From Macrostomum lignano (taxonomy: Eukaryota): a stretch of 64,000 nt of DNA. Where the stretch lies: NCBI GenBank assembly GCA_002269645.1, contig NIVC01000333.1, positions 1 to 64,000 on the forward strand. The letters run 5' to 3'. The notes beneath the pieces are model-generated. The model was not told the DNA's origin. It made no database searches and was given only the letters and a program-made list of their open reading frames with translations. Positions within the stretch are counted from its first letter, which is position 1. The number at the start of each line of letters is the position of its first letter. The translations under genes were made by a program, and so were the position numbers. Positions 1 through 61,612 of the stretch are shown in pieces.

Positions 1-3000
1 CTCATCAGTGGCCATCAGCCTGGTGACGTCCATCCTCAGGGCACCCTGCTGCTACCCGACAGGTCGACTGGTGCCAACATCGACGCGTCAAAGATCCGGA
101 GCTGGGTCAGCTACGGCGACGCCCGTGACGACAGCGCTGGCTCCGGTGCTGCGTGACCTCGGCGGCGTTCCGCTGGTCAGCCCGTCGGCCAGCTCCGACG
201 GCCTGACGGCCCTGGGTCTTCCGCACCGTCAGCCAGCCAGCCTGTCGCAGGTGTCTGCCATCATCGCCGTCATCAACAAGTTCAACTGGAAGTGCGTCCA
301 GCTGGTGTACTCTAACAATGATTATGGAAACCGGCTGGCTACTGAGTTCCGAGTGCAGGCTCTGCGGGAGGAATCTGCGTGCCACGCGCTGCCTTGAGGT
401 CGGCACAGACGGTTCGGTGCCTCCATCCTGTCGAACATTATCCGTGAGTTATACTGCAGAGGATTTAATTTCAAATTTTGTATAAACTGACTGATGCGTG
501 AGAAGCAAGTTGGTGAAAATCTCAGCTTTTGGCTCAAAATCAATTTTCTATTTAAGACTTGTGAATCACGTTAATGTGAATAAAGTGCATTAAAGTGCGC
601 CGATTAACGAGCATAGTAATGGTTTCAAAAGGGTACCCAGCCGAGTGAGTGAAGCAGAGTTAAGCAGAGTCGGTCGCGGTTAGTTGGCAGCAGCCTGAGC
701 TGCAGTTGGAATACAGAGTGAGAGTTGTCAGCGAGTTGCATGTTACAATAGCAGCGCCCCAGTACACAGACATTTTTCTTAGTATTTCGATACTTCAAAT
801 CTCAATTTCAACCGGCTTCATTTCACAGTCGACATCTCCAAGACCCGAGTAGTGTGGTGCTGTCGGACAAATCGGCCGACCTCGTCCAGCTGACCGCCGA
901 CAACAACGGCCTCGTGTTCATCGCCAGCAACTACTGGGGCGAAATGACGCGCGACAGCGCCCTGAGCGGCCTGGGGCCGGGCGCCAACAACAGCTGGGTG
1001 ATGCAGGTGAACTCGCCCGACGTTGCCGGAGTGACGGCCCACCTGAGCGGCCTGTCGGCTGACAGCAGCATCGACAACCCGTGGCTGGTGCCCTACTACG
1101 AGGCGCTGTTCAACTGCAGCACCACGGGCAGTTTGGCTTACAGCTCCCGCTGCAACAACAGCTGGCCAATGGCTGCCTCGCCGCAGTTCTATCCGGGATT
1201 GTTCATGATGACAACCACCAATGCGCTGTTCAGCATTGCCAAAGCCTATGCGGATATGCTGGTCGCTGGTTGCAACAGCTCCTACACCTGTGAGTCACGG
1301 AATACGGGCCGATTGTGACGACTGTTTGAGCCGGTAGCAGGTGTTTAAATGGAGAATCATTCAGTGAGGTGGGGTGTTTAAATGGAGAATCAGTCAGTGA
1401 GGTGGGGTGTTTAAATGGAGAATCAGTCAGTGAGGTGGTGGTGTTTAAATGGATAATCAGTCAGGGAGGTGGTGGTGTTTATATGGAGAATCAGTCAGGG
1501 AGGTGGTGGTGTTTATATGGAGAATCAGTCAGGGAGGTGGTGGTGTTTAAATGGAGAATCATTCAGTGAGGTGGTGGTGTTTAAATGGATAATCAGTCAG
1601 GGAGGTGGTGGTGTTTAAATGGAGAATCATTCAGTGAGGTGGTGGTGTTTAAATGGATAATCAGTCAGGGAGGTGGTGGTGTTTATATGGAGAATCAGTC
1701 AGTGAGGTGGGGTGTTTATATGGAGAATCAGTCAGTGAGGTGGGGTGTTTATATGGAGAATCAGTCAGTGAGGTGGGGTGTTTATATGGAGAATCAGTCA
1801 GGGAGGTGGTGGTGTTTATATGGAGAATCAGTCAGGGAGGTGGGGTGTTTAAATGGAGAATCAGTCAGGGAGGTGGGGTGTTTATATGGAGAATCAGTCA
1901 GTGAGGTGGGTGTTTATATGGAGAATCAGTCAGGGAGGTGGGGTGTTTATATGGAGAATCAGTCAGGGAGGTGGGGTGTTTGAATTCCGAAGTTTCAAAA
2001 TGATCAGCGCAAAGCAACAATTACGATGAATTGGCTACACTTGCACTCGCACTGCACCCCACCTAGCCGTCTGCCCGAACTTCTGGTTGAACCCCGGACT
2101 GAACGGACAGCTGGCAGACAGGCTGTCTGCTGTCAAATTCCTAGCTCTCGGCGGCAGCAGTTTTGAATTCCGTTCCAATCGCGATGGCAACATGGGCTGG
2201 CTGGCGCTAAACCGGGTGGGCCCGGACTACCTTCCAGTAGGCAGGTACATGTTCAGCGTGCTCAGCGATCTGCCTGCGTTCCCCAGCCGCAGCTCCGTGT
2301 ACAGCTCAGTGCCAGCCGCCTGTGCCGATTGCACCAACTGTCCGAAATCGCTGGATAGGACGGAGAAGTTTCTCTATGTGCCCGGCCAGCTGCTGATTGG
2401 TGGTGAGTAATTTAGCTAGCGAAAGCATTTGTCTAAAGTCTACTCGTAATAATGAAGGTGCGAGGTGATGCATTTTATCTAAACTGAATGGGTGTGAAAT
2501 CTGTTTGAAAGAGATCTCGTGCTTCCTATCGGAAGCTAGGCTTTCATCCAATAGGGTGAAGCGAATAGAAATGTAGTGAGGTGGGCGCCCAGTGGCGTAG
2601 GAAACCCGCTGACAGCCAATGGGGTGAAGTGAATAGAAATGGAGTGAGGTGGGTGCCCAGTGGGGCAGGAAAGCTGTTGACAGCCAATGGGGGCAAAATA
2701 AATAGAAACGGAGTGAGGTGGGCGCCCAGTAGGTTAAGAAATCAATGAACAAAAAGGACTTATTTGAGAGAGGATGAAGAAAAAATAAAGTTAGAGAGAA
2801 GATATACTTTCACTCCTCACCCGCAGGCCTCTTCGATGTGCACTATTCCGGCTCTGTGCCGTTCAGCTGCGGCAGAGTCAACGGCCAGAACGGCTTCCTT
2901 CTGACGGAGGTTTTCAAATACGCCATCGAGTCCATCCAAACCAGTCCGATATTCTCTGGAAAACTTCGCGGCGTTAAGGTTGGCGGCATCGTCATGGACA

Positions 3001-6000
3001 CCTGCTCGTCAGCTGTGCGCACGGACAGCCTGGTGGCCAATCTGCACTCGGGCTCCATCGTGCTCAGGGACTCCAGCTTGAACCGAATTGACCCGGAAAA
3101 GGTCATGGCTTACGTGGCTGCCTCCACATCCGAGATGGCAGATCAACTGTCTAGGGTGGGTTTTTACTCAGTCAATTACCTGTTCGTCCCACACTCAGCG
3201 GTGATGAGAAATTGTTAAACTAACGGTCCATGGGTGTTTTATAGATAAGTATTAAGTAGCTGAGTAGTTTGGGTGATTTTTCGGGCTATTTCCCAAAAGT
3301 AGGATTTTTGGGCTTTTGTCAATTGCCTCCCGGAGGGGCGCAGATTACTAGTCCACATGTACTAAGTTTTTACGACGTGGTTTATTTACCAACTCAACTC
3401 GCCCCTGCGCACCTGTACAGGTCACCAACGTGGTGCAGGTGCCCGTGATCTCCTACGCGGCCACCATGAGCTCCCTTAGCAACAAGCAGCTCTATCCGTA
3501 TTTCTCGCGCACGGTGCCCAGCGACGACAAGGTGGCCTACGCTATTGTGGATTTCCTGAAGCGCTACGGCCTCACCAATGTACAATTCGTGCTGTCTCCC
3601 GGCGCCTACGGATCTAGCGGATTGCAGTCTGTTCAGCGAGCCATCGCTAACGAAGGCATCTGCATCAGTCACACTCTACAGGTAGATTTTCTGCTCAAAC
3701 AGAGATGGGATCAAGACGACACGGGGGTGTCTCGTACATGTATACTGTACGTGCATATGTAGCTCGGGGAGCTTAAAAGGTGCCCCCACAGGGGGGTCAT
3801 TGAATGCTAGTCCATATACTAAATGCTTAAATCTCAGCACTGTACAAGCAAGGAAAAAGCCAATTAAATCTAAATAAAAGTTTCAACTGGGCCCTGCCAT
3901 TGACTCTCACAGGTGAACCGCACCGGTCTTACCGCTGTTAACGCCGATCAAGTGGCCTCCGAGCTGCTGAAGAGGCCCCAGTCAACTGTGATTGTCACCT
4001 TCCTGCAGTCTAACGACCTCGCTGAACTTCTTGGCGCCGTGTCGCGAAATAATCTTACATACGATCGGTTCCTGTTTATTGGTAAGCGAACTTCGTTGAC
4101 AACAAGGTCATTCAGGTGCTTGCCTAGTTGAGGCCAGGGTGAGAAGAATTGAGACAGTCAGACAGACAGTAGAACATTATTACAAGTAGTTCAAGCAAGT
4201 AAAACTAGCCGAAAATAAGTGGTTGTAAAACTTGCAAGTACAGGGAATAACTGTAGTTAGCGGAAGCAACGATAGTACCGGAGGCAAAGATAGTACCGGA
4301 AGCAGCTGGTAGTACCGGAAGCACCGATAGTACTGGAAGAAGTTAGTAGTGCCGGAAGCACCTGGTAGTACAGGAAGCACCGATAGTACTGGAAGAAGTT
4401 AGTAGTGCCGGAAGCAACAGGATTAGTGTTGGTCTGCAAAGGAGATACACTAGAAAAAAACATTGCCTGCAGCATCTCCCAGTCGCTCATCTCAGTCTCC
4501 AGCTTACACCAGCTCTCCAACATTACCAACCCCACCTCACTCGCAAACCAGGCACGACCTACTGGGGCAACAGCAAGACTGTGCTGAGCAAAATCACCAA
4601 CGGCCGCTATCCTCGAGCCATCACGTTCGGCTTCGAGACCGCCGACCTCACTGACTTCGAGCGAAGCTACCTGCTGTCAAAGAATCCAACAAGTTACGCT
4701 TCAGTGAATCCCTGGTTCAATGAGTACTATGAGCACCTGTTCCAGTGCACCCTGTCCAGCAGTTCGCCCTACTACAGTAAAAGATGCAGCTCGTCTACAA
4801 TGTCGCTCACGGATTCTAGAAACTATTCACAGGTGAGCGCTAGAACCAAGGCAGCTTCATAAGAGCACATGAGATGCTGTAAAAATCTTGTAACTAGGGG
4901 CTCTTTCATGCAGGTGTTCAGCCCTGCTCAACACAACGACCCATTTTGTCATTCTAGTGTCATATATTGATATCAAACCCAAAGTTGCTTCAATAAATAT
5001 CTCAAAGTTTGTACGGGCTGATCTAGGATTTTTCCCGGCAAGGGGGTCAGCTGACCTTTTTGTGACCCTCTCCTGGATCTGCAATTGAACGTTTGTTCGA
5101 AAAGGGTGACGCGACACCGTTAAGACTTGTTTTAGAGAGATACAAGTATTTAAATACTAAATGGTATAAAACGATATTTGAGCGATTGGTAAAAGTTTGG
5201 GTAGAAAGTACATGATGTATGCATAAGTGAGATGCACATTTTGCGCGTTAAGCAGGGCACAAGGTGAGTTGAAGTTTAATAGTCAGTGACAGCCCTCACA
5301 TTACGTCATCTTCCTCCTCCAAGTCTAAAGAGCGATTGAATTAACAGACTTCACGGAACTGCAGTTCATTACTCTAGACGGCAGTCCTAGAGAGAGTTTT
5401 TAAAACATACAGTTTATGATCTTGTCTTCAAAAGCTTAGGAGAATTTGGAGTTCTGTGTCTGATCTTTAACACGTTAAACTGGGTATGATATCGACAACA
5501 TCCAATTGTCGGCTCATTTTCAACTTTTTTATTTACCGAAAACAAATTGAAAGAAACTGATGCCATTTTGAAAGAGCTGTAAACTTTTTTGATTGAAAGG
5601 AATTGCGAATAAAAGAAATAAAAGAATCCCCGCCCCGCCGTGGACACCCGCAGGACTCACTGGCCCTCTATGTTGTGAACGCTGTCTACTCCACCGCGCT
5701 GGGCATCCACACGGCTCTGCTGCGCATCTGCGGTCCGGACTACAACGGCATCTGCAGCGACTTCTACGGCTCCGGCGAGAAGCGCCAGTGGGTGCAGAGC
5801 GGCATCCGGTCGGCCGTGTTCGTCGACGCCACCAATTTGAACTTCACCGTCAACGCGGCCGGCGACAGCAACCGGGGCTACCACATCTACGAGCTGCGCA
5901 CCACATCATCGGGCTTCTTCTATTCCAGCGTCGGCGCCTACAACGATACGGCACTGCTAAAACTGCGCAGCGACTTCAGCCTGGCCTGGACCAGCAACTG

Positions 6001-9000
6001 CAGCCTGGCCGGCTCCTGCGACACCGTCTGCCCGAATCTGGGGCGCAACCTGTGAGTACTCCCGTCTAATTGGTTGCTATGGGGAATTTATAAGAATGTG
6101 GATAGACCACCCACTGACATCATACACCACCCACTGACACCCTACATCACCACTGACATCATACACCACCCACTGACATCCTACATCACCACTGACATCA
6201 TACACCACCCACTGACACCCTACATCACCACTGACATCATACATCACCACTGACATCATACACCACCCACTGACATCATACACCACCCACTGACATCCTA
6301 CATCACCAACTGACATCCTACACCACCCACTGACATCCTACATCACCACTGACATCATACACCACCCACTGACATCATACACCACCCACTGACATCATAC
6401 ACCCCCACTGACATCATACACCACCCACTGACATCATACACCACCAACTGACATCCTACACCACCCACTGACATCCTACATCACTCTCTGACATCATACA
6501 ACTCCTAATGACATCATACACCCCCACTGACATCATACACCCCCACTGACATCATACACCCCCACTGACATGATACACCCCCACTGACATCATACACCCC
6601 CACTGACATCATACACCCCCACTGACATCATACACCCCCACTGACATCATACACCCCCACTGACATCATACACCCCCACTGACATCATACACCCCCACTG
6701 ACATCATACACCCCCACTGACATCATACACCCCCACTGACATCATACACCCCCACTGACATCATACACCCCCACTGACATCATACACCCCCACTGACATC
6801 ATACACCCCCACTGACATCATACACCCCCACTGACATCATACACCCCCACTGACATCATACACCCCCACTGACATCATACACCCCCACTGACATCATACA
6901 CCCCCACTGACATCATACACCCCCACTGACATCATACACCCCCACTGACATCATACACCGCCAAACTGACATCTTGAAAAACCGGCAGACACCTTATGCC
7001 ATCAGATGTCAATCTGGATATCTACCGCTATCTGAATCACGCCCATCTTATTCAGACCAACCCTCACCCCGCCGCCAGCTCCGTGTACATGCAGGTGAAC
7101 TCCAGCAGCATGGACCTGAACCTCGTGCAGTTCCTGTCAGTCCACGGCAGCCGGTCCGCATCCCTGTGCGGCCCCATGAACCTGCAGTCCGGCTTCAACA
7201 ACCTCCTGGCCTTCCACTACGCCATCGACCTCATCAACAACAACAGCGACCCCGACGTCTCCGGCTTCAAATTCGGCGGCCTTAGCATCGATGTCTGCCA
7301 GTCGGAGGCTCGGGCGGCCACCTTCGCCTTCTCCTACACGTCCGGCACCGGCATCTGCGGCTACGCCGGCTTCACCGAACTTGTCGGCCCGCTGACCGCC
7401 GTCGCTTATCTCACCGACGGTTCGGCGGTCAGCGCCAGACTGGCAACCGTCGTGCCAGACTCCACCGTGGTGTCGCCGGATGCCACCGCGATTTCATTGA
7501 GCAGTCGAGCATTTTACCCGAGATTCCTGCGGGTGGTGCCGCCGGATAGTGTGCAGGTAAGGAGCGATTTTTTCGGGTCATAATATTCGTATTCTTATAC
7601 TAGAAGTAGTCGAGATTAGCGATAAAGTAGTCTACATAAGCACTTTCATTAACCTCTGTCTCAAAATCTACCACCTGCTCATCCACATCCAACCACCTGC
7701 TCACCCACATTTATAACCTCCTCACCCACATTAACAACCAGCTCACCCACATCCAACAACCTGCTCACCCACATTTATAACCTCCTCACCCACATTAACA
7801 ACCTGCTCACCCACATCCAACCACCTGCTCACCCACATTCAACCACCTGCTCACCCACATTCAACCACCTGCTCACCCACATCCCCAATGCCAACCGCCA
7901 GATCGACGCCCTCCTAGACGTGGCCAGCAGCTACAACTGGTCGGTGGTGTCCCTCATCCACGACACCACCCCGTTCGGCTTGGCCGGCAAGGCGGCCTTC
8001 GAAGCGGCGATCGCCCGTCGCAACGGCAGCCAGTCGGTTTGCATGAAGTACATCGGCGCCGGCGCTGCCGGATCGGCGATCAGCCTGGCCGAGGCCAAAG
8101 CGGCGCTGCAGTCGGCAAGCCGGATGGCGTACGTCAACGCGCTGATCGCCTACCTGCCCGAGCAGGACCTGCGCACCTTGCTGACCGCGGTGCGCGAGCT
8201 CGGCCTGCAGGGCCGATTTGTACTGCTCGGCTTGGACAGCTGGGCGGACAAGATGTCCGTGGTGCAAGGACTGGAGTCGGCGGCACTGGGAGCCGTGACC
8301 CTGCGCCAGACCTACTTCACTGTACCCGATCTGGACCGCTGGGTGGCCGAGATCGGACTGGCGCCGGCCAGACGGAAGGGCATCCCGGTGGACTGGCTGG
8401 AGGTGAGGGAGGAGGTCACGATGTGTCAAAGTTGATTGAATTTTTAAAGGCATCCGGTTTCAAGCGTGTGGGGTCTCTACCAGATTGCTCTCTCTCTCTC
8501 GGTAGAAGTGAGAACTTACAGGGGATAGGTGTAGGGTGATACAGAAGAAAATGATGAGAGAGAAGGAGAGAGGAAGAGAGGAGAGAGGGAGAGAGGAAGA
8601 GAGGGGCTATGCCTCTCCCTGCCATGCTCCTCCCTGCCCTGTACATTCACCCACCTCACTTCATCAATCTTGATTCTAATTGGCTGACGGGAGAGAGAGA
8701 GAGGGGAGAGAGAAAGAGAGAGGTAGATAGGGGAGAGGGAGAGAGGGGAGAGGGAGGGAGGAAAAAGAGAGGCTGATAGGGGAGAGGCAGAGCTCATTGA
8801 GAGCCAAAATCCCAACGAGTATTAAATGGCAATTTTTTCTCCTCAATCGCCACGAGTATACATGAATGGGCTCTGCCAATCTTGGAGAATCCTAACCCTG
8901 ACGCCTACACTGAACTCTCTCGCTCACCACAGGAATTCTGGCAGCACACGCTGAAGTGCCGTCTCACGGGCAGCTCGGTGATCCAGACTCAGTACGCCAC

Positions 9001-11514
9001 CGTCTGCGACCCGAGCGGCAGCCTGCCAGCGGGCGCGCTGACCCAGAACGGCGGCACCTACTCCACCATCCTGTCCGCATTCATCGCCGCCAAAGGTGTC
9101 GCCGATTTCCAGCGGGCCGAATGCGGCACGACGGCAACGGATGTGTGCCTGTACCGGATGCCGGCGGCCACTCGCCTGGCAACTATCTACCGCTATATTA
9201 GCAACGCGCAGTGGCGGGTGCTGCAGGGCCGGCTAGGCAACGACAGCCTGCTGTTCCGGTTCACTACAGATGGCTACGGAGATCGGGGCTACGATGTGCT
9301 CAATTTTGTCCGGTCGGGCTCCGGATATGTCTATAATAAAATTGGCTATTGGCGCAATAGATACGTGCCTCAAGCTGGCCAGAGGTGAGTACGATTCTAT
9401 TTTTAGAATTCCGTGATTACGTCACTTCGACATTATGCCCCTCCCTGCCCTGTACATTCACCCACCTCACTCCCTCTATCTAGATTTTGATTGGCTGACG
9501 GAATTCTAATCTCGCCTCACGAAGCCTGAATTTTCCGACCCCAGCGAACACTCCTGCCATTCAATACTATCAGCATTTTCAGACACACCATCAGCATATT
9601 GAGACACATTACGAGCGTATCAGCATATTTAGACACATTATCAGCATATTGAGACACATTATCAGCATATTGAGACACATTATCAGCATATTGAGACACA
9701 TTATCAGCATATTGAGACACATTATCAGCATATTGAGACACATTATCAGCATATTGAGACACATTATCAGCATATTGAGACACACTATCAGCATATTAAG
9801 ACACACTATCAGCCTATTGAGACACACTATCAGCCTATTGAGACACACTATCAGCCTATTGAGACACACTATCAGCATCGCTACATATCGGTGCCCTCAC
9901 CGCACTCTTCAGCCTGGCCACCTACGGTCCCGATGGCAGCCAGCTGGCCGCCACTCCGTCGTCCGCCTGTCCGACCGGCGTTGACTGCGGCTGTCCTGGC
10001 GACTCAGGCGACCCACTGGCCCTGCTGCCCAGGCCGAACGTGTGGGACCGGGCTCGAACCCCGTGGGGCGCCGTGCTGCTGGCGCTGACCACCCTTGGCG
10101 CCCTGGTGACCCTGGTCGCCATCGGCTTCTTGGCCTACGCGTTTCCCCGCAAAGTGCAGGGCACGGCCGGCACCAACTATCTCGGCTTCGCGTGCCTAGT
10201 CGGCATCCTGCTCATCTTCGCCATCAACATCGCGTTCATCGCCCACGCCACCCCGGTGGTGTGCACCATCCGGCGGTTCGGCCTCTCCCTGGTCTACTGC
10301 ATCGTCTACGCCAGCCTGCTGGTGCGCAGCGTGGTGAACTGGACCATCTACAGGGCGGCCGGCTCCCCAGGCGAAGGTCCATCCTTCACCGGCCTGAGCC
10401 ACCCGGTCAGCCTGCTGGGCCTGTCCATCTGCATCTGCCTGGTGTCGGCCATGCTCGGCACCGAGTGGCTGATCCTGCAGCGGCCGGACAGCGTCGAGCT
10501 GGTCGCCTACGAAGGCGTCGCCTGGAGCCGTTGCAGCCCGTCGAGTTTCTACGACGAAGGCCTGGCGCTCAGCTGCCTGTACCCGGCCGGCCTGCTGGTG
10601 GCTGCCGTGGTGTACTCGCTGCTCAGCTGGGACGCCGATTTGACCGACTCGCGTCAGGTGGCCCTCGGCCTGCTGTTCTGCGCAGGGGCTCAGCTGTGCT
10701 GGGGCTGCGTGTCCACCCTCACCGGCTATAAGTGGCGCGATCCGGCCATCTTCGTTGCTAACCTGGTAGCCGCCGGGGCAGTGCTGCTGTGTCTGTATGT
10801 GCGCAAAGTGGTGCAAGTCTGCCGGGTGAGCAGGGAGAAATCTTCATCTGCTGAGGATCAGAACATCGCGTCTGGCGGATATCCGACTAAGAGCATCAGC
10901 ATGGGTAGGTTGCGGCGGGTGTTCTGCTTGGTATCTGGGTGGTGGGTCGTGTCTCTTGATAAGACGAAGGGCCGAGGGTGCTCGATGGCTAAAGAAGAGG
11001 CGTCTCAAGGCTGAGGTGGAGGGTGTCTCAAGGCTGAGGTGGAGGGTGTCTCCAGACTGAGGTGGAGGGTGTCTCAAGGCTGAGGTGGAGGGTGTCTCAA
11101 GGCTGAGGTGGAGGGTGTCTCAAGGCTGAGGTGGAGGGCGTCTCAAGGCTGAGGTGGAGGGTGTCTCAAGGCTGAGGTGGAGGGTGTCTCAAGGCTGAGG
11201 TGGAGGGTGTCTCAAGGCTGAGGTGGAGGGTGTCTCCAGACTGAGGTGGAGGGTGTCTCCAGACTGAGATGAAGGGTGTCTCAAGGCTGAGGTGGAGGGT
11301 GTCTCAAGGCTGAGGTGGAGGGTGTCTCAAGGCTGAGGTGGAGGGTGTCGCAAGGCTGAATCCAAAGGTGCCTCACAGGCTTAAAAGATTAGCTCGTCTA
11401 TCGAGCCTGAATGTGTCCAAATTCTGAAGCAGGTGTCTCATTTCGTTTATTATGTGTATCTTGAAGTTGAGGCATTACTTCATTATTTCAGACGACATCA
11501 AAGTCACCTCCTAA
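1..11514 (+). CDS. Class C (metabotropic glutamate receptor-like) GPCR with at least 3 tandem Venus-flytrap (ANF_receptor) domains plus 7tm_3; 5' end lies upstream of the window. Exons: <1-443, 829-1289, 2067-2402, 2827-3155, 3421-3681, 3913-4081, 4552-4832, 5654-6051, 6989-7556, 7902-8402, 8933-9384, 9913-10904, 11492-11514 (about 1730 codons in the window)
   Basis: All introns are GT-AG, and exon phases join in frame from exon 2 to the stop (ending SISMDDIKVTS*). VFT motifs recur: PGQLLIGGLFDVH..C, PVISYAAT..LSNKQLYPYFSRTVPSD, NWKCVQLVYSNNDYG, VVSPDAT..FYPRFLRVVPPDSVQ, YNWSVVSLIH. Seven hydrophobic segments with the class C CTIRRFGLSLVYCIVYASLLVR motif lie in 10040-10830. Apparent indels occur in the first 870 nt. 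Confidence 0.9.
1340..1980. repeat. Intronic minisatellite, about 33-36 bp unit (GGTGTTTATATGGAGAATCAGTCAGGGAGGTGG)
   Basis: Direct tandem copies visible; fills GPCR intron 1290-2066. Confidence 0.95.
6105..6972. repeat. Intronic minisatellite, 19-22 bp unit (CACTGACATCATACACCCC)
   Basis: Homogeneous 19-bp period in the distal part; ends about 16 nt before the acceptor at 6988. Confidence 0.95.
7670..7885. repeat. Intronic minisatellite, about 22 bp unit (CCACCTGCTCACCCACATCCAA)
   Basis: Tandem copies in GPCR intron 7557-7901. Confidence 0.9.
9565..9876. repeat. Intronic minisatellite, 21 bp unit (ATCAGCATATTGAGACACATT)
   Basis: Tandem copies in GPCR intron 9385-9912; explains the repetitive ORFs at 9517-9984. 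Confidence 0.95.
10999..11360. repeat. Intronic minisatellite, 23 bp unit (GGCTGAGGTGGAGGGTGTCTCAA)
   Basis: Tandem copies in the last GPCR intron. Confidence 0.95.
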
Positions 11515-13959: not shown

Positions 13960-15460
<1,501 letters not shown>

Positions 15461-16159: not shown

Positions 16160-16432
16160 TGCTGAGGTGGAGGGTGTCTCCAGATTGAGGTGGAGGGTGT
16201 CTCCAGACTGAGGTGGAGGGTGTCTCCAGACTGAGGTGGAGGGTGTCTCCAGACTGAAGTGGAGGGTGTCTCAAGGCTGAGGTGGAGGGTGTCTCAAGGC
16301 TGAGGTGGAAGGTGTCTCAAGGCTGAGGTGGAAGGTGTCTCAAGGCTGAGGTGGAGGGTGTCTCAAGGCTGAGGTGGAGGGTGTCTCAAGGCTGAGGTGG
16401 AGGGTGTCTCAAGGCTGAGGTGGAGGGTGTCC
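16160..16432. repeat. Minisatellite, 23 bp unit, same as the array at 10999-11360
   Basis: GGCTGAGGTGGAGGGTGTCTCAA tandem copies. Confidence 0.95.
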
Positions 16433-19541: not shown

Positions 19542-26632
<7,091 letters not shown>

Positions 26633-27944
26633 GGGCCGATGGGGGCTGATGCAAGCCGGGTAATTCGTCTAAAATTATATAGAATAATACCGCTAAAATA
26701 AACTAATAAAATGCCAGTATATTATTCTTTGTGTGCATTATTCTTCATTTAATTTTTTTATGAAAACTAAACAGTAAAATAATAATTGCTAAATTCCATA
26801 GTTTAAAATGGAAATCATACAATAATATATACTATGAACATATCTTACTTAAGCAGCAATTTTAAGAAAAAATTTCCATGAAAATATTTCTCAAAACTCA
26901 CAAACTCTATAAGTAACACCTCAATATTCAACAACTGACATTTTATTTAAACTGTTTTTTTCACCCAGGAATGAATACATTTCTGTTTCGGCCATTCAAA
27001 AGTTAGTTACAAATAATCTGCATGCTATACATGTAAATGCTACAATGTACATGCATTTTTAAATGCAACTTACCAGACTCCAATTCCTGGGGGAAACAGT
27101 GAGATGTCTTGTTGTTTGAATTTTTTTAGTATTGTTATCCTATGATGCTTTTTTATACCGTTGCAAAAAACTTTAGGTCGTATGAACAAATTCTACAATG
27201 AAATTATGTTACTATCTGCCTCCACTGTATTGACTGTCACATTGACATTTGCGCAGCAAACCGTTCTTTGCAATTAGAAAAAAATTGAGTGCTTCCTTCT
27301 CGTTTTCTGTCAAATATCTTTTTAGGCAAGGGAGCATTGCTGCTTCTACGTACTTGTAGACTTAATGCAAGGATGTATCGAGAAAGTTTAAAAAAGTCCT
27401 TTACATTTTATCGATGAAAATTATAACAAAGTTTGAACTAACCTTTGTAGGCATGCTTAACTAAATTACCTTTGTAAAACACGTACAGCGAATTTTATTT
27501 CGATATGCTTTAAATATTATTTAAGTTATATTTTTATTGTTAACAGTGAAGACGGGCATAATAACGGATGGCAAGGCATATTAGGTGATTTCGGTCTTCA
27601 ATGTACCCTAATTCCTAATGAGTCGCAATTTACATGCGCGTCGATGTCAGCGGTAAAATATCCAGGGAAAACGGAATGCTGAGAAAGGTAAACTAATCGT
27701 GATTGCAAAGTTGTGATTTATGCGAAATAATCGATTTACTTGAAAAAAAACGTTTAAAATAATGACAAGACCAATTTAACATGAAAAATCAATCATGCTT
27801 AGAGCAGCATGTGAGACACAAAATAGTGTGATTAGGACTTTCTCTGACACTGTTAAGAGACCCAATCACTGTTTTAGTGTTGAAAATCGTGAAATTTCCA
27901 ATCTCCGTAGTGTATTTTTCCGGTGAAACCTGCCTTTAAAACTA

Positions 27945-30837: not shown

Positions 30838-33800
30838 TCAGTTGCCCAGGTACGATCTGGAAATTTGATGAGGTAAATATTGTAAAAATGGTTTTCTTTT
30901 TTATATTAGAGTATATTGAGATTCCAGATAAGGAGATTAAAGATCCCAGATTAGTTTATTAGCATAACAGATTAGGATGATGGGATTCTAGATTAGGACA
31001 TTAAATTTCCAGATTAGGATATTAGAATAACAGATTAGGATATTATGATTCCAAATTAGGATATTAAATTTCCAGATTAGGATATTAGAACAGATTTGGG
31101 TATTAGGATTCTAGATTTGGATATTAGACTCCAGATTAGAATATTACTCGTAGGATTCTAGATTAGGATGGTGGATTCTAGATTAGGATATTGGGATTCT
31201 AGATTAGGATATTAGTATTCTAGATAAGGATTGGAATTCTAGATTAGGGCATTATTATTCTAGATTAGGATATTGGGATTCTAGATTAGGATACTGGGAT
31301 TCTAGATTAGGATATTGGGATTCTAGATTAGGATACTGGGATTCTAGATTAGGATACTGGGATTCTAGATTAGAATATTGGGATGCTAGATTACGAATAG
31401 GATATTTTGATTCCATATTAGGATAACTGGGATCTTTATGGGTCTTTGCCAGTAAAAGCTTCTTTCAGTTTATTGTCATAATCCTAGCCTTAATCCTACC
31501 AATGCCAAGCTCAACAAGCCTCAATAAACTTACGGCAGCTTGAACTTGATAAACACCCGGCTAACAAAGAATCCAACTAGGATGGCCAATAGGCCAATAG
31601 CCAATAGGATAATCCGGTTCAGCTTAGGCAGGCTAGGCTTGTTAGTCTGATCCAGAATGATGAAGCCGCAGCCGCCAAGCAGAAACATGAAGCTGGAGGC
31701 CAGGCCCTCCATGATGTATTGGCCATTGATACGGTAAGCCATGAAGGCAACCTGGATAAATAATAATGAGAAGTAATTTAAGAGTAAAAAGTATTAATCT
31801 TTAAGCAGATAACTGATGCATTAGATTTTAACTTACAGGCTTGCTCTTGCCATTGGCATCTGTAGTTGATCCAATTGATGGCGGCTCAACAATTACATCA
31901 TAGATGACACCTACAGATAGTACAAATAGTGACATAGATTAGATTACTGTAATATAGCCCATATTTAAGCCCATACTAAAACCTTCTAAGGTATAGATTT
32001 GGTAGCAAATAGTGATTATATTTTCACATAATTGTAGTTGATTTATTATGATTTAGTTTTTATAGACTTGCAATTAAGCAAATTTGTTATCTAAGGTTTA
32101 ACTAACAAAACTAATAAAATAATTAGCCATAAAAATAGTCTGTTAATAAGTATTAGTTCAATAATAAGCATTACTATTTACTAAGCATCAAGGTTTTTTT
32201 CTACTAACAAATCTTCAGTTCTCAAACAATAAACATTGGTAACATTATGCTTGTAAATTAGATTAAAATCTATCAATAAAACAATAAGAATATAAAGGGA
32301 CTTTTTAAAGGGACTATCATTTAAAGGGACTTCAATGTTATCTAAATAGCACCATAGCAAGGGTACATTTTTGGACTAGTATTTTCAAAGAATGCTATCA
32401 AGGAATGATATACTATAGACTTGCATTTTCACAAGTGCCAAAGCTATTGCAAAGGAGGTACTACAAGTTTTTGCAAATCTTAGCAAACATATTTTAATAT
32501 AATTCCTATTTAAAAAAACAAAAAACAATTGTGGATATATTTTTCTGTTCATTTCCTATGTACATTGCTTCTATAGTTAGGATCATGGCAACACCTGTAC
32601 CAGAACAAATCCTATAAAAAAGTTAGCTTGTGCTGTGTTTTGGAGCTATTCTTATCAAACAAGTTTGCTTATACTATGTATTAAACTATTCTTTGTCAGA
32701 AAAAACTACAACATACCACCAATTTTTACAATAATCTTGCAAGTATAACTTGTGTAACTATAAGTGTAAGAGAAATTGTCAACTTTAATAATAAAAGCTA
32801 AAGCCTAAATTTATTTTTTTTTGTTTTTTTAATATGTTTTATAGAAGCTACAATACTGATATATTTTAATTAAAAAAAGCAGTCAATATATTTTCTATTA
32901 GCAAAAATAATGTCAAATTAAAATATCTTATCCTATACCAAATTTCACTGATTTTTTGTCTTGTTCCATACGGTGTTGATTTTTTTCTTTGCATGCCATA
33001 GTCAAGAAAAATGCATATATGCTAAAAATCTCTAGGGTATGTTTAAGTATTTGGTATATACATTTACCAATTATATTGGCTAGTTATTGGCCAATTACAT
33101 TATAAATAATTGTCACAACAGTTGTCTATGCATTTATAATCATAAATTTTGATAACTAATTAATGCAAAACTAATTTCTTTGTTTTTTACAAGGTAAAGG
33201 TATGGATTTCTAACAAAAATATAAATTTTGATTTTTGTTCTTTATATACATGAAACATTATATAAATATAACTACTATTTTAGTTTCTAAGGTTCAAAGA
33301 AAATTGGTTGAACAGTTTCTTTCTGAAATCAATCACATACCTTTACCTACCTAGATATTGACAAACCAATTTTTAGTATATAGACTTTGTCTAATTGAAA
33401 TTGAATATAAAAATCACTAGTCTAATATAAACATTTCAAGACTGACAAATTTACAGCTTTGCATAAGGTACTATATTGGCATATAGAAAAATTTAGGTCC
33501 TCTTTTTTTCTAAGATATATATAGTGTTCCAAACTTGGCCTACATGCTAATATGCAAAAATGTACTAGCAAAATGCATGTGCAACACCTTTTTGCACTAT
33601 AATTTTTCTATGAAAAAGGTCATTTTTCTGTCTATGGCACTGCATATACATTTGTAATTAATAATTAATTACAAAACTGCTTCATAAAAAATCTAGAAAA
33701 ATTACAATGTTTTGTACAATTTAGATTTAGAAAATGCTTATAATTTTAATATATAAAGAACACCTTTGTCAGCTAAAATTATTTTTAAAATGCTTTTTGT

Positions 33801-36716
33801 ATATAAAATACTAAGTTTTATGCATAGGCCCCTATTGCACTATTATTTATTTATTGTTAATTCAAAGTAAAAAATGGTTCAAATTCTTTAAATTCTAAAA
33901 AAATAACTTTGAACTTGAAAAAGATTTAAACTTCTATTATTGAATAATAATAATTGCTAAAAATAAATTTTAAACAGTCTTTAGGGTCTTCTAAAAATAA
34001 TTAATTGTTTTGTACAATTTAACCTAAGGCAAAGCTTAAACTATATAAAAATAGTATTAGTGACATCATTTATTTTACTTTTAGCCCATAAAAGCTTGCA
34101 TTACCAAATAACAAAAAAGCTATATATTATACAGTTTCTTCTTAGTGCATAATGATTTCATTCTATAGTTTATTTAAATTTCATTCTATATTTTTACAAA
34201 AAATAATTATACAGTTTGGCAAAATCCAAAAATGTGGGATAAAATGGTAAAACAAATCTGTGGACATTTGATAGAAGGTAATGTAACTAAAAAAGCTCTT
34301 TGAAAGATAGATATTAGACTTTGAAAAAAAAGTTCTGGATAAAAACTATTGTTTTCATGCTTTATATTACTGAATACATGAGTAAAAAACCACAAAAAAG
34401 TATTTTAAAAGTCTAAGTTAACCAATTTGCAATTTTTTGTTTCATTTTGAATTTATAAACAATTAATTTTAAGACTTGTAGACCTTAGAGAAGGCTAACT
34501 TTTTCACTACTTACAAAACAGAAAGTATTCAGTGTTTTAATTTTTATTTTATTCAAAAAGATGAAGTATTTCTAAGGATTTCTAAGTTTTTCTAAAACCA
34601 TATAAAGTTGCAAAAATTCATACTAATTTAAAGTGCAAAGTTTGCCAGCAAACATCTTTCTCTAAAAGTAAATATACCGCTAAATCCTTGTTGCAAAATA
34701 ATCTTTAAGTTGTTTTCTTTCATTTAAATATCAACTTGTATGGTATTAGTATATAGGCTATAATATGCCTATATTTAGACTTAAAATTTTTGGGTAAAAA
34801 TGGTACCACAAAATATGAACCCGGCATCCAAATCAAATCCTTTCTGTAGGCTTATGAGGCAATTACACTGAAACAATGAAATTACACTTAATATATATCA
34901 TTGCAGGGCATATACAAGAAAAAAAATAATTTTCCAAATTGCTTTAGTAGAAGCTAAGTAAAATGCAATTTTCAGATCCTTATGGTTCCAATATGTTACC
35001 TGGCTTCCAAATTAGATGTTTACCATATGTTTATTAAGCAATAAAGAACAATGAAATTATACTATAAAAATATGTATCATTGCGGCATATATACAGGAAT
35101 TTTTTTTTCCAAATTGTTTCAGTAAAAGCTAAGACCTAAGTAAAATGTAATTTTCCAATCCTTATGGGAATTTGTGTGCTTAAATAATAAACTTAATGTT
35201 AAATACAGTATTAATTGCAAATTAACTCTATAAAATACACATTGTTAATAGTAACAAGTGATAAACAAATAGGCCTAAACCCTTAGGCTATACATTAATA
35301 ATTTGTGCTTTTATAGATACTTCTAACTTTTTAAGCTCAAATAAATTAATTCTATAGCTTTATTGATTTCAAATTGTCAAAAAAACGAATTTTCAAAAAA
35401 CTTGCCAACAATTTTGGATTTCGCCAGTCTACATCCTATAATTATAAGATATTATCTATTTTAGCTGTGTTGGGCACCAGTCCATTAATAGGCGTTAATA
35501 AGTGTTAAGATTTTTCATTAACATTAATAGACTGTCGTTAAGATTTTTTTGAACTAACAAATTAATGAATTTGTGTTAAAAATTTGTGAATTAATGATAA
35601 ATTCATAGTTAACGGTAATGTTTATGTTAATGACCAAAGACACAAAGAAGGAACGAAAAATAGAAGTCTTACAAGAAGTTTAAACATTACGAACGTATTT
35701 GAGCTTACCTATATGCCTAAATATAATCTCTTTATTTATGATGATGATTATACAGAGGTACATGTAATTAACAACTTCTTAAAAAATAAACTTTAAAATA
35801 ATGAATTAAAATAGTGTGAAACTTTTTTTCTTGCGCATGAGAATCAATCGCTTTGATTCACTTCTATCCCAATCTTTCGCAACTTTCTGCTGCACCTGCT
35901 AATGGTACTGAAACAACCTTATGCATATTTACTTATGAATTTCTTATTATTAGCTCTTAAGTTTCAAATAAAATTAGTTACTTTTTTACCATATGCTTTA
36001 CTTATAGTAGTATTATGCATGCAAGTTTTTAAAATGATTATTTATTACTTTTTTAGCTTTCAAATTGCTTAGATGACCTCTGTGTTTCGCTAAAAAGATG
36101 GAATAGCAAAGACGTGCAATACGAAGTCTGTTTTGGAAAAAATGTGCAAGATTTCCATATTTTCTGTGTTAACTTTAATGGATTAACACTTATTAATGAT
36201 TATCAGTTAACTTAACAAAATTAGGAGTTAAAAAGTTAAGATTTTTTTGTTTTAACGCTAACGCTTTTGCTATTAATGGAAGTTAAGATTTTCATTAATG
36301 GTGCCCAACACTGTATTTTAGTTATTCAATGAGTTTAGATCTACCTTTTGGTTGACTGCTAAGATATTAAATTTTCTTTTTAAAGCTTTTCGGCATGGGA
36401 CTAGCTAGCATTCTGACATTGCCTAATCATTGCCTAGGCTAAAACTAAATTTAATAAATTAATAATACAAAACGAATGAAAACGCGCACAACAAAAAAAT
36501 CGAGCACTGAAACATCTTAAAACCCTTTATGCCATTGTCTCAGCAATTAAATATGCACTTAAAAGTTACAAACTTACCTCCAGTTACAAGAAAGTATGAC
36601 ACCAAGATAAGCGCGAAGACAAACATTGGAGATGGCGTTTTAAGCCATGATGGCTTGCGTAATTTTAGATTTGGGCATATGAAAACTTGGAAAGGCAAAC
36701 TAAAAAGGGCTTCCAT
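30838..36716 (-). CDS. OSTC: Oligosaccharyltransferase complex subunit OSTC (DC2), 149 aa; exons 36716-36578, 31910-31837, 31751-31534, 30856-30838
   Basis: Translation [47 protein letters not shown]|[14 protein letters not shown]...KP|[21 protein letters not shown]...KLP|SYLGN*. All introns are GT-AG, phases are consistent, total 450 nt. Confidence 0.97.
30990..31420. repeat. Diverged AT-rich minisatellite, about 21 bp unit (GGGATTCTAGATTAGGATATT)
   Basis: Tandem copies in the last OSTC intron. Confidence 0.85.
35465..36313. mobile_element. Non-autonomous hAT-like DNA transposon in OSTC intron 1
   Basis: TIRs C(T/A)GTGTTGGGCACCA / TGGTGCCCAACACTG; perfect 8-bp TSD TATTTTAG at 35457-35464 and 36314-36321. 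Confidence 0.88.
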
Positions 36717-37049
36717 TCTCTGAATGACAATATAAATAATAATTAATTATAAAAAAATGAGTAGGCTCAAGTGCTGTGACCAAGTATCAATTACAAGTTG
36801 ATCCTCTTTGGTGGTCGGTCGATCTTTTGATTTTTCCAAGAAATGATAGGAAGTTCATACTCGTCAAAAGTCGTGGAAAATAAAATAAAACAATAGTTTG
36901 AACTAAATAGCATTTACTTAAGCAGTTAATGTAATATTACTGCTTTAGTGTAATTTTACAATAAAAATGCCAATTTTAAACACATTCATAATTAGTAGAA
37001 TCGCATTTATTAAAGGCTTACACGATCTAAATATCTTGCATCGTATAAT

Positions 37050-37737
37050 CAAGGACGACTTAAGTAGGACGGGAAACCTCGTTTCTTAGAAAAGTTTTGA
37101 AGGCACTTTTCCCGAAAAAAATACACTACGGAGATAGGAAGTTGTCATTTTTTCAGCACAAAAATTGTTATTGCGTTTGATAGGAGACAGGAGTGTTCAT
37201 CTTTTGATATGTTGTGCCTTTTTTATTGCTCTATCGATATTTATAAAGCTTTTCGTTCAGAAAATTAGGATTCTATGTTAATTTTTTATTTTCCGTATAT
37301 TTTCGCGTGTCTTGTGCTTGAAATACATTAGAATGCCACGGCTCGGCTCTTTGGTTTCATGAGTCTATTTTATCATTCTTACCCGACTGTGTAGCAAATA
37401 TTTGTAACAGAGATGATAAAATAGGTTCATAAAACCAAATATTGGAGCTGTGTCATGCATTTTTGTGATTTTGTAGATACAGGAAATATACTTAGAATAA
37501 AAAATTAACATAGAATCCTAATTTTCTGAACGAAAAGCTTTATAAATATCGATAGAGCAATAAAAAGGCACAACATATCAAAAGATTAACACAGGATCTG
37601 CCTCCTATCAAACGCAATAACAATTTTTGTGCTGAAAAAATGAAAACTATCTCCGTAGTGTATTTTTCGGGAAAAAAGTGCCTTCAAAACTTTTCTAAGA
37701 AGCGAGATTTCCCGTCCTTCTACTTAAGTCGTCCTTG
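37050..37737. mobile_element. Foldback-type MITE with about 235-bp terminal inverted repeats and an 8-bp TSD
   Basis: Termini CAAGGACGACTTAAGTAG / CTACTTAAGTCGTCCTTG; long inverted arms; TSD CGTATAAT at 37042-37049 and 37738-37745. Confidence 0.92.
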
Positions 37738-39079
37738 CGTATAATTCGCTTCTTATATCCGTTACTAAAATTTGCATTTAGAATGTTTGACTAGAGCGTT
37801 ATGGACATTCAAACATACTTTGTACAAACCTTAGATATTTAGTATATTTGGATTTTATTTGATACTCATTAAAAATAAATCTGCGACTTCTGGGTCACAG
37901 ATTCAAGCTATAATGCAAGGCACCAACATTAATTAATGTCAGTAAGTGCACTCGATTGTCAATAAATCAAGATTCGAAAATAACTTAATGACTCATGTCT
38001 GTCAACATTAATAAATTAATCATTTGAAAGTATCCTGATAAACATAAATAAACTAGTTGTAACCAGGGGTGAGGGGTCGGATCGATTTGATGGATTTAAT
38101 AAGATTATGAATCACACTTTCCTAGAGCGAAAAAATAAGAACCATGACGTCAAATTAATTAAACAAAAACGACCCACTTTAGTTGGATGCTAAAGATCGA
38201 TCCAGTGTAGTAAAAATAAACGCAAGTGACGCGCAGTTAAGAAATTTCCGCTTTAATAATCTGTTAGCTAAAGTGTGGCAATCATATGTATTTGGAAAAA
38301 TATTTCAAAACGCTTGATTATTAAATGTACGTAATGATAACCGAATTAAATTTACAAAAATTTACAAACCCACGGATCGACAAAGTCTACATACATGTAA
38401 TACCGCGACCAAAATAATCAGTTCTACACTGTAAAGGACAACACAAGACATAGATAGTAAATGAATAAGACAATATCTAGACCCAACAGAATTGAGCAAG
38501 TGTAAACTCCCGATCATACTGCGCATGTGCATGTACATGATGTCGAAGAAGGTTGGCTGGCAATTAAAACAAAGCATGGAAATAAATCAATGATTCCCTA
38601 AATCAAATATTTTGTCATTAGAGATGTGTCAAGTCAACCTATTATCTATTTCAGTGTCGGAATAGAATGACGCAGTGTACTTGTACTTCAAAATTGTTAT
38701 CTTAGCATCGTTATAACCATTGTCACCGTTATAAAAATAAATTATCCAGCCCGTATAAATAAATAAAACAAAAATGACGCGTATACCTAAAAAGTGGAAG
38801 GATGCGATGGTTAATCAATTTGAATGAGTTAATTAGGTCATTCATCTAGTCAATGCTAGAATACAGTGAGACCAATGATCTTGTACATGTGATCCTAATT
38901 TTGCAAGACACAGGGTAAATATAACTGATTTATGATAATTTTTATGGTTTTAAAAAGACATCAAAATCAACAGGCAATAGCAAAGGAAAAGTGAAAGAAA
39001 CAAAAGAAAAACGAAAAAAATCTCTTTTAAGTTTCGAGGTCAGTGTTACTTGACATAGGATAAATCTCTCGAATCTGAG

Positions 39080-57609: not shown

Positions 57610-58196
57610 TCCTAACCTAAAGCCTAACCTAAACCTAAACCCTTATCTAAACCTAAACCCTAACCTAAACCTAAACCCTTATCTAAACCTAAACCCTTAT
57701 CTAAACCTAAACCCTTATCTAAACCTAAACCTTTATCTAAACCTAAACCCTAACCTGAACCTAAACCCTAACCTGAACTTAAACCCTAACCTAAACCTAA
57801 ACCCTAACCTAAACCTAAACCCTAACCTAAACCTAAACCCTAACCTAAACCTAAACCCTAAACTAAAAATTTATCCTAACCTAAACCTAAACCCTAACCT
57901 AAACCTAAACCCTAACCTAAACCTAAACCCTAACCTAAACCTAAACCCTAACCTAAACCTAAACCCTAACCTAAACCTAAACCCTAACCTAAACCTAAAC
58001 CCTAACCTAAACCTAAACCCTAACCTAAACCTAAACCCTAAACTAAAAATTTATCCTAACCTAAGCCCTAACCTAAACCCTAGCATAAACCCTAGCATAA
58101 ACCCTAACCTAAACCTAAACCCTAAACTAAAAATTTATCCTAACCTAAACCCTAACCTAAACCTTAACCTAAACCCTAACTTAAACTCTAACCACA
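57610..58196. repeat. Interstitial telomere-like array, 18 bp unit (CCTAAACCCTAACCTAAA)
   Basis: The minus strand reads TTTAGGTTAGGGTTTAGG repeats. Confidence 0.92.
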
Positions 58197-61088: not shown

Positions 61089-61169
61089 CCTGGCTTTGGT
61101 CTGCATATTGGAAAGTACCAGGTGGAAGGCGATGTGATAATAAAAGTGAGATGTCAAGTGCCCACATGA

Positions 61170-61612
61170 TACTCAAACCGAGAGGTAACTCTACATGCGG
61201 TACTCAAACCGAGAGGTAACTCTTCATGCGATACTCAAACGAGAGGTAACTCTACATGCGATACTCAAACCGAGAGGTAACTCTTCATGCGATACTCAAA
61301 CCGAGAGGTAACTCTTCACGCGATACTCAAACCGAGAGGTAACTCTACATGCGATACTCAAACCGAGAGGTAACTCTTCACGCGATACTCAAACCGAGAG
61401 GTAACTCTTCATGCGATACTCAAACCGAGAGGTAACTCTACATGCGATACTCAAACCGAGAGGTAACTCTTCACGCGATACTCAAACCGAGAGGTAACTC
61501 TTCACGCGATACTCAAACCGAGAGGTAACTCTTCACGCGATACTCAAACCGAGAGGTAACTCTACATGTGGCACTCAAACCGAGAGGTAACTCTACATGC
61601 GATACTCAAACG
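61170..61612. repeat. Intronic minisatellite, about 31 bp unit (GATACTCAAACCGAGAGGTAACTCTTCATGC)
   Basis: Tandem copies in the 5'-UTR intron of the CAP gene. Confidence 0.95.

Follow-up and report, generated by a model that had tools for sequence, protein, structure and literature searches.

The first 11,514 bases of a 64-kb stretch of Macrostomum lignano DNA (the window hereafter, meaning the whole stretch) probably represent the 3′ part of a gene for a giant class C (glutamate-family) G-protein-coupled receptor (GPCR). The full form, reconstructed from near-identical paralogous copies, would have a signal peptide, five Venus-flytrap domains (VFTs) each with a three-cysteine linker, and one seven-transmembrane domain (7TM), with about 2816 amino acids in total. 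The window holds half of VFT3, followed by VFT4, VFT5 and the 7TM. It is identical to the start of contig NIVC01000333.1 (assembly Mlig_3_7, GCA_002269645.1), and by exact protein look-up its beginning was found to be locus L001, the record range of which begins at base 1; the receptor gene is therefore truncated by the contig end and not by the window edge. The GenBank coding sequence (CDS) at this place is PAA85355.1 (854-11514, plus strand, partial, gene Mlig023709g2, 1551 amino acids), which is annotated as a hypothetical protein.

The stop-free segments of the plus strand were spliced via canonical GT/AG borders into a single open frame, the translation of which equals PAA85355.1 from 854 on. 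An initial annotation, made from the letters of the DNA, had proposed a single class C GPCR chain in which three or more VFTs (its units A, B and C, which are VFT3, VFT4 and VFT5) precede one 7TM. This proposal is supported. Three matches to the Pfam family ANF_receptor (PF01094), and not one, were obtained together with one match to 7tm_3 (PF00003) in one spliced frame, all of them exceeding the gathering cut-offs. The ANF_receptor matches have E-values of 5.7e-10 for unit A (partial), 2e-42 for unit B (profile positions 4-350 of 353, which is full length) and 2.5e-22 for unit C, and the 7tm_3 match lies in exon 9913-10904 (2.4e-24, 86.8 bits against a cut-off of 33.5, profile positions 4-247 of 251). 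On the spliced protein no Pfam families other than ANF_receptor and Peripla_BP_6 (VFT units) and 7tm_3 (this exon) were found, and NCD3G (PF07562) gave no match at E up to 0.1. An NCD3G lying below the threshold was ruled out, the stalk being too short and having three cysteines against nine. The landmarks of the initial annotation were found at their places, namely FLYVPGQLLIGG at 2369, LVQFLSVHG at 7122-7148 and the CDS end at 11514.

Hydrophobicity of the 7TM exon gives seven hydrophobic segments downstream of a short stalk. In alignment with mGluR3, CaSR-like and GPRC6A-like sequences the class C hallmarks are kept, that is the cysteines of transmembrane helix 3 (TM3) and extracellular loop 2 (ECL2), the basic residue of TM3, the tryptophan of TM6 and the lysine of TM7, in the stretches VCTIRRFGL, ..RCSP.., LLVRS, QLCW and YVRKV. 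The search of PDB sequences aligned VFT4 end to end with mGluR3 (2e4u, 3.3e-56) and VFT5 with the 7TM to mGluR4 and mGluR2 at 1e-40, and for every module mGluRs were the nearest solved structures. The AlphaFold2 model of VFT4 and VFT5 has a mean predicted local distance difference test score (pLDDT) of 77.7, with VFT4 mostly at 75-92, and both flytraps are well folded; by Foldseek the model superposes on mGluR extracellular domains with a TM-score up to 0.89.

The joining of these modules in one chain was analyzed at each junction. The end of VFT3 (unit A), the linker and the start of VFT4 (unit B) lie in one open frame in the plus-strand exon 2067-2402 (splice sites ctag|CC and TG|gtgagt), around which the stop-free frame 2 extends over 2030-2407. 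The landmarks of this exon are ..GPDYLPVGRY at 2219-2248, the linker CADCTNC at 2321-2341 and the VFT4 start FLYVPGQLLIGG from 2369; between the two VFTs there is a 40-residue linker with no stop, start or hydrophobic signal peptide. A paralogous copy of the gene, locus L002 on contig NIVC01001224.1 of the same assembly, 98.6% identical, has a single exon (3709-5910, 2.2 kb, 734 amino acids in one frame) which contains the end of VFT1, the whole VFT2 and the first half of VFT3. The junction of VFT4 and VFT5 (6051|7079) has a gtgagt donor and a pyrimidine-rich acceptor, is in phase, and is used in the GenBank models of four gene copies (PAA85355.1, PAA70592.1, PAA46492.1 and, in a shifted frame, PAA54223.1).

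It is also conceivable, with very low probability, that units A, B and C are separate products, either of adjacent single-VFT genes or of a polycistronic precursor cut by spliced-leader trans-splicing, so that the receptor would be only VFT5 with the 7TM and VFT1-4 would be a secreted binding protein. Two UniProt entries based on the ML2 models divide the locus exactly in this way: A0A1I8I0J7 (2001 amino acids) has a signal peptide and four ANF matches and ends exactly at the VFT4 end (..CPNLGRN), and A0A1I8IJG1 (842 amino acids) starts at the intronic ATG at 6996 (MPSDVNLDIYRYLNHAHLIQ...), frame 3 being open from 6978 through the acceptor at 7079. In M. lignano, moreover, multi-gene precursors make up about 7% of the transcripts (PMC5730564). 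However, the 842-residue model lacks a signal peptide, the 2001-residue model stops at a splice donor without a membrane anchor, and A to B as well as VFT1 to VFT2 to VFT3 are joined within single exons. The GenBank annotation of Mlig_3_7 goes back to a transcriptome built from RNA-seq with the genome as guide, in which transcripts were cut only where trans-splice and poly(A) sites had experimental support (PMC5730564), and this pipeline left the gene whole in several copies. The fused layout is also present in relatives from at least seven phyla, in one of them as an uninterrupted 8.4-kb open reading frame (ORF). We read the locus as coding for a single chain because A and B share an exon, L002 has a multi-VFT exon, four models use the B-C junction, the split models are incomplete and the relatives are fused.

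When the N-terminal part from A0A1I8I0J7 is joined to the window part, a protein of 2816 amino acids with five VFTs is obtained. The initial annotation had also taken the gene to be 5′-truncated, possibly with more units upstream, and this was borne out by two more VFTs and a signal peptide in the paralogous contig of L002 and in A0A1I8I0J7.

To find relatives, 1.84 billion representatives were scanned in full by HMMER with VFT5 and the 7TM as query. The best matches were proteins of 2200-2900 amino acids with 3-6 matched stretches. About 30 relatives were named, from Tubulanus (nemertean), bivalves, gastropods, a chiton, octopuses, Lingula, Limulus, a scorpion, a tick, a mite, Procambarus, Saccoglossus, Branchiostoma and Diadema, and nearly all of them are labelled 'uncharacterized' or 'hypothetical'. 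Among the fetched proteins 12 have about five VFTs with the 7TM, 13 have about four and 4 have about three; about five occur in nemerteans, molluscs and brachiopods, about four in chelicerates, one crayfish, one acorn worm and one sea urchin, and three in amphioxus. Pfam gives five ANF matches and 7tm_3 in proteins of Tubulanus (2787 amino acids), Sinanodonta (2798) and a Logan contig (2802), and four ANF matches with 7tm_3 and a signal peptide in a Diadema protein. The Logan protein is coded by an uninterrupted ORF of 8409 nt; the contig that carries it, of 9030 bp, has untranslated flanks and resembles an assembled mRNA. Judged by these matches, the window gene is the flatworm ortholog of a bilaterian-wide and so far uncharacterised receptor family, and the multi-ANF predictions of other invertebrates which the initial annotation had mentioned are its orthologs.

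The modules of the family (V1-V5, numbered as the VFTs) were compared between and within proteins. Flatworm V1-V5 against V1-V5 of Tubulanus score best on the diagonal (165, 139, 206, 360 and 276 bits), the off-diagonal scores of V3, V4 and V5 being 63-131, 85-227 and 63-112 bits, and the same diagonal pattern was found against the Logan protein. Against a bivalve, V1, V4 and V5 are clearly diagonal, and V2 and V3 match the bivalve V4 about as well as their own counterparts. Within the flatworm protein the VFTs score only 23-140 bits against each other. The most conserved part of the ectodomain is V4, in which flatworm and nemertean are 41% identical; in the other modules the identity is 27-32%. 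Since the modules pair one-to-one between flatworm and nemertean and only weakly within the protein, the five-module array is, on this comparison, older than the split of flatworms, nemerteans and molluscs, and neither a recent duplication nor an artefact of assembly. Collapsed tandem genes as the source of the array were considered separately and rejected, as the modules score no more than 23-140 bits against one another and every one of them has a separate ortholog elsewhere.

Some labels in the databases do not fit this family. The Octopus vulgaris ortholog (P0188, 2632 amino acids, about four VFTs) is named 'Metabotropic glutamate receptor 3', a label that is not justified by the features of the five-VFT family. 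Two models of Polypterus senegalus named 'CASR protein, partial' (KAG2462629.1, P0054, 3927 amino acids; KAG2462797.1, P0072, 3171 amino acids) resemble the family in having many VFT matches in one predicted protein (5-8 VFT equivalents, at most one 7TM match); they differ in their far lower scores, 213 and 148 bits against 751 for Tubulanus. CASR-type models of this kind belong to a vertebrate gene family in which tandem arrays are known, and the two Polypterus models are probably adjacent receptor genes merged by annotation and not true multi-VFT receptors. No insect or nematode was present among the about 30 names looked up, and vertebrates only through these two models, no systematic search having been made; vertebrates, insects and nematodes may have lost the family.

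The repeat unit was defined on those VFT junctions in five species which a motif scan recovered: C-x(2-6)-C-x2-C comes after the VFT, and about 10 residues further on the next VFT starts with [FY]x[YF]xPG[DQ]..GG.F. The V4-V5 junction and the stalk before TM1 of the flatworm protein carry a similar short cysteine motif, and the window linkers are CADCTNC, already given, CSLAGSCDTVC (5999-6031) at the end of VFT4 and CPTGVDCGC (9968-9994) in the stalk. In the PDB alignment the three-cysteine linker aligns to 'SQCSDPC', where the cysteine-rich domain of mGluR3 has its first cysteine pair, and it is best seen as a putative remnant of this domain.

The inter-protomer disulfide of mGluR, CaSR and GPRC6A is formed by a cysteine in the loop that connects the DxC motif with the GxxG(S/T) strand. 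This loop cysteine is present in V1 of 12 and V5 of all 13 five-VFT proteins and in none of the 13 for V2, V3 and V4; four-VFT proteins have it only in V1 (8 of 11). In the window it is found in VFT5, within GICGY (7350-7364), at the position of the mGluR inter-protomer disulfide, and not in VFT3 or VFT4. The five positions of the alpha-amino-acid-binding consensus are best kept in V4 (in 13, 11, 12, 9 and 8 of 13 proteins), V3 being next, and for V3 as well as V4 the S/T, T/S and D positions are intact in 10-13 of the 13 proteins. The full set of glutamate contacts in mGluRs comprises S, T, D, Y and a second D, with R or K for the distal carboxylate. By alignment S, T, D and Y of this set are kept in VFT4, with L at the lysine position and T at the second aspartate; in VFT5 F replaces Y, and in VFT3 both aspartate positions are lost.

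Judging from its sequence, the receptor would probably work as a class C dimer. VFT5, the module nearest the membrane, may relay the conformational change to the helices, because it has the mGluR-type dimer-loop cysteine and a short cysteine stalk to the 7TM. VFT4 would be the most probable site for a small ligand, as it is the best conserved module and has most of the S/T, T, D, Y consensus, and VFT3 may perhaps be another. The loop cysteine of VFT1 may form a second, distal dimer contact at the tip, and the middle and distal modules could provide extra ligand sites, allosteric control or a structural role, by analogy with the amino-terminal domain of ionotropic glutamate receptors and with VFT1 of BvgS. 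The receptor may serve as a multi-ligand or coincidence-detecting chemoreceptor, as the initial annotation had suggested. A further proposal, which we consider unlikely, is that the bilaterian ancestor already had a class C receptor of four or five VFTs, covalently dimerised at both ends (VFT1-VFT1′ and VFT5-VFT5′), in which several pockets were jointly read by one 7TM pair for coincidence or ratio sensing. If true, the activation of the four- or five-VFT receptor would differ from the textbook layout, in which a chain has a single flytrap, cysteine-rich domain and 7TM.

The chain may also be real with extra VFTs that are not ligand sensors and serve as rigid stalk, spacer or adhesion module, either carrying one working VFT far from the membrane or contacting matrix or cells. 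The loss of four of the five consensus ligand-contact residues in flatworm V2 and of two of five in V3 speaks for this, as do the poorly kept consensus in most modules of the four-VFT relatives and the cysteine linker after every module, which could stiffen the chain. The retention of S/T, T/S and D in V3 and V4 across the five-VFT proteins and the strong conservation of V4 between flatworm and nemertean are contrary to it, and the AlphaFold2 linker is of low confidence, which is not rigidity. We regard such a use of the extra modules as rather improbable.

Several points weigh against the five-VFT receptor as presented here. The single-transcript claim draws on short-read-derived transcript models and orthologs, and the older ML2/UniProt models divide the gene at the VFT4/VFT5 intron into the proteins of 2001 and 842 amino acids. 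The window copy bears frame-breaking indels in 1-853, and their reading as assembly errors, given below, is itself inferred. The AlphaFold2 check advised by the initial annotation gave the two well-folded mGluR-like flytraps but no confident VFT4-VFT5 orientation, the predicted template modelling score (pTM) being 0.51 and the linker pLDDT below 50 with only 7 aligned sequences. The modules of the four-VFT protein of Diadema have no clear one-to-one match to the spiralian five-VFT modules. The V2 losses count here too, flatworm V4 has T where mGluRs have D318, and the ligand-site and cysteine arguments come from alignments.

The receptor was compared with known systems. The mGluRs (mGluR2, 3, 4 and 5) are the best sequence and fold match for every module, and share with it the TM3/ECL2 cysteines, K/R in TM3, W in TM6 and K in TM7, as well as the position of the loop cysteine in VFT5 and VFT1. 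In contrast, mGluRs have one VFT per chain against five in the flatworm receptor (three in the window) and a nine-cysteine NCD3G against only a three-cysteine remnant after each VFT; the TM7 motif is RK in protostome members of the family and PK in vertebrate receptors, and the flatworm set of glutamate contacts is incomplete as far as alignment tells. Receptors of the mGluR/CaSR/T1R/GPRC6A type have an NCD3G and one VFT, and the flatworm receptor has neither feature. GABA-B is similar in joining a VFT to the 7TM via a short stalk without NCD3G, but its subunits have a single VFT and form an obligate heterodimer, and its similarity is far below that of mGluRs, no GABA-B chain being among the 60 best PDB matches. 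Ionotropic glutamate receptors (iGluRs) have two clamshells per chain, the distal amino-terminal domain being of the ANF_receptor family and acting as allosteric and assembly module. They are by analogy a eukaryotic precedent for stacked clamshells in one chain, but they assemble as tetramers, have an ion-channel pore in place of a 7TM and carry only two clamshells, which differ in type. Sensor kinases of the BvgS/EvgS type have two tandem periplasmic VFTs per chain in a dimer, of which the membrane-proximal one transmits and the distal one modulates (PMC4352136). They share tandem VFTs in one receptor chain with the flatworm receptor, but are bacterial histidine kinases and have no homology to it beyond the general fold.

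Activation models of class C receptors assume one flytrap per subunit, with closure, dimer reorientation and relay via the cysteine-rich domain. Five serial flytraps without a cysteine-rich domain raise the question of how distal closure crosses several domains, whether the modules have different ligands, and why the layout was kept for more than 500 million years across many invertebrate phyla. A survey of glutamate-family architectures lists metazoan types with ANF+NCD3G, ANF alone and Cache+EGF and no multi-ANF type (PMC12716839). Multi-VFT class C receptors were not found described in our literature search, which did not reach most subscription journals, so this absence is not proof, and for tandem VFTs in one receptor chain the same search found only the bacterial BvgS/EvgS. 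The sequences are already public; what is new is the recognition of a conserved family and not of a one-off prediction. The family provides a candidate sensory or neuromodulatory receptor, so far unexplored, for the biology of flatworms, molluscs, ticks and crustaceans. It also exposes an annotation problem, since its genes are split in some databases and at least one ortholog carries the label 'mGluR3'.

The 5′ end of the window copy was analyzed against L002. From 1 to 853 there are 11 indel events and 1 substitution, 8 of the indels being in coding exon 1 and one at 853. From 854 to 1300 there are zero differences, and the coding sequence from 854 (4656 bases) has 0 indels and 8 substitutions, 5 of them synonymous. 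Over the whole aligned locus, with introns and gaps counted, the difference is about 1.4%, and the comparison points to constraint on the coding sequence of the copies. The true reading frame thus shifts several times within 1-443 and once at 853, and the GenBank partial CDS begins at 854 because indels disrupt the frame before it. In agreement, the tblastn alignment of PAA70592.1 residues 688-837 to window 2-451 requires frame changes. The single in-frame CDS of the initial annotation therefore holds from 854 on, and across 1-400 its frame is open partly by accident of the indels.

The indels in 1-853 are most likely long-read errors in weakly polished sequence at the contig end. Alternatively, the frameshifts would be real and the window copy a decaying duplicate (pseudogene) of a functional gene on another contig. 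The number of indel events within 853 bases, most of them in coding exon 1, would suit such decay, and in the DV1 line, which was the one sequenced, chromosomes are duplicated and duplicated blocks amount to 180 Mb (PMC5730564). We consider decay quite unlikely, because the 11:1 ratio of indels to substitutions is extreme and the indels are confined to the first 853 contig bases and stop abruptly, the next 4656 coding bases having none. The pattern is what would be expected for a weakly polished long-read contig end, the source itself giving only that Mlig_3_7 was assembled from PacBio reads with Canu and polished with Pilon (PMC5730564).

All exons and introns of the gene model lie on the plus strand. 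The first exon (1-443) codes for the first half of VFT3 (unit A), its 5′ end is lost at the contig end, and about 8 small indels against the paralog break its frame; its donor and the next acceptor were placed from the L002 positions 5902 and 6289. A junction of donor 378 to acceptor 829 was tried and rejected, as it is in frame but wrong, the paralog showing that exon 1 extends to 443 with the frame disturbed by indels. Exon 829-1289 codes for the middle of VFT3, with a 1-bp deletion at 853 and 100% identity to the paralog protein from 854, and is followed by the shared exon 2067-2402. After the VFT4 start in this exon, VFT4 (2827-6051) continues in five exons (2827-3155, 3421-3681, 3913-4081, 4552-4832 and 5654-6051). 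The VFT4/VFT5 intron (6052-7078) starts with gtgagt, ends with ccgccag, has an in-frame TGA at 6053-6055 and contains a 19-bp minisatellite at 6110-6973. VFT5 (unit C, 7079-9384) has three exons (7079-7556, 7902-8402 and 8933-9384). The exon of the stalk and the 7TM (9913-10904) has TM1 from about 10064, VCTIRRFGL of TM3 at 10259-10285 and the TM7 end ..LLCLYVRKV at 10784-10810. The last intron (10905-11491) contains a 23-bp minisatellite at 11002-11359, and the last coding exon (11492-11514) ends the CDS with ..DDIKVTS and the stop; donor 10904 (GG|gtaggt) and acceptor 11492 give the GenBank C-terminus.

Minisatellites with a period of 19-34 bp occur in 5 of the 11 receptor introns (1340-1985, 6110-6973, 7673-7884, 9618-9878 and 11002-11359), and shorter arrays in 3 more. 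The 23-bp unit of the last intron reappears 5 kb downstream (16161-16431) and has grown to more than 1 kb in L002. Downstream of the receptor gene there is also a purine-rich low-complexity array of GA type (14040-15412, GC skew 0.6, AT skew 0.5).

Further into the window a minus-strand gene similar to EF-hand proteins of the neuronal-calcium-sensor type has coding pieces at about 19545-19847 and 26162-26668, between the exons of which lies a 21-bp minisatellite (19975-25118, 245 copies, 5.1 kb, 93% matches). Its counterpart in L002 codes for 191 amino acids and spans only 2.25 kb, and the array is therefore either greatly expanded in the window or collapsed in L002. A block of very low G+C (32000-38000, 25-32%) is flanked by gene-bearing parts of 44-55%. 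At 57614-58191 there is an 18-bp tandem array, AACCTAAACCCTAACCTA, of 32 copies with telomere-like CCCTAA/CCTAA units in an internal position, and at 59949-61172 (minus strand) open frames resemble, by eye only, a protein with a CAP/SCP (CRISP-type) domain and are flanked by minisatellites of 20, 34 and 31 bp.

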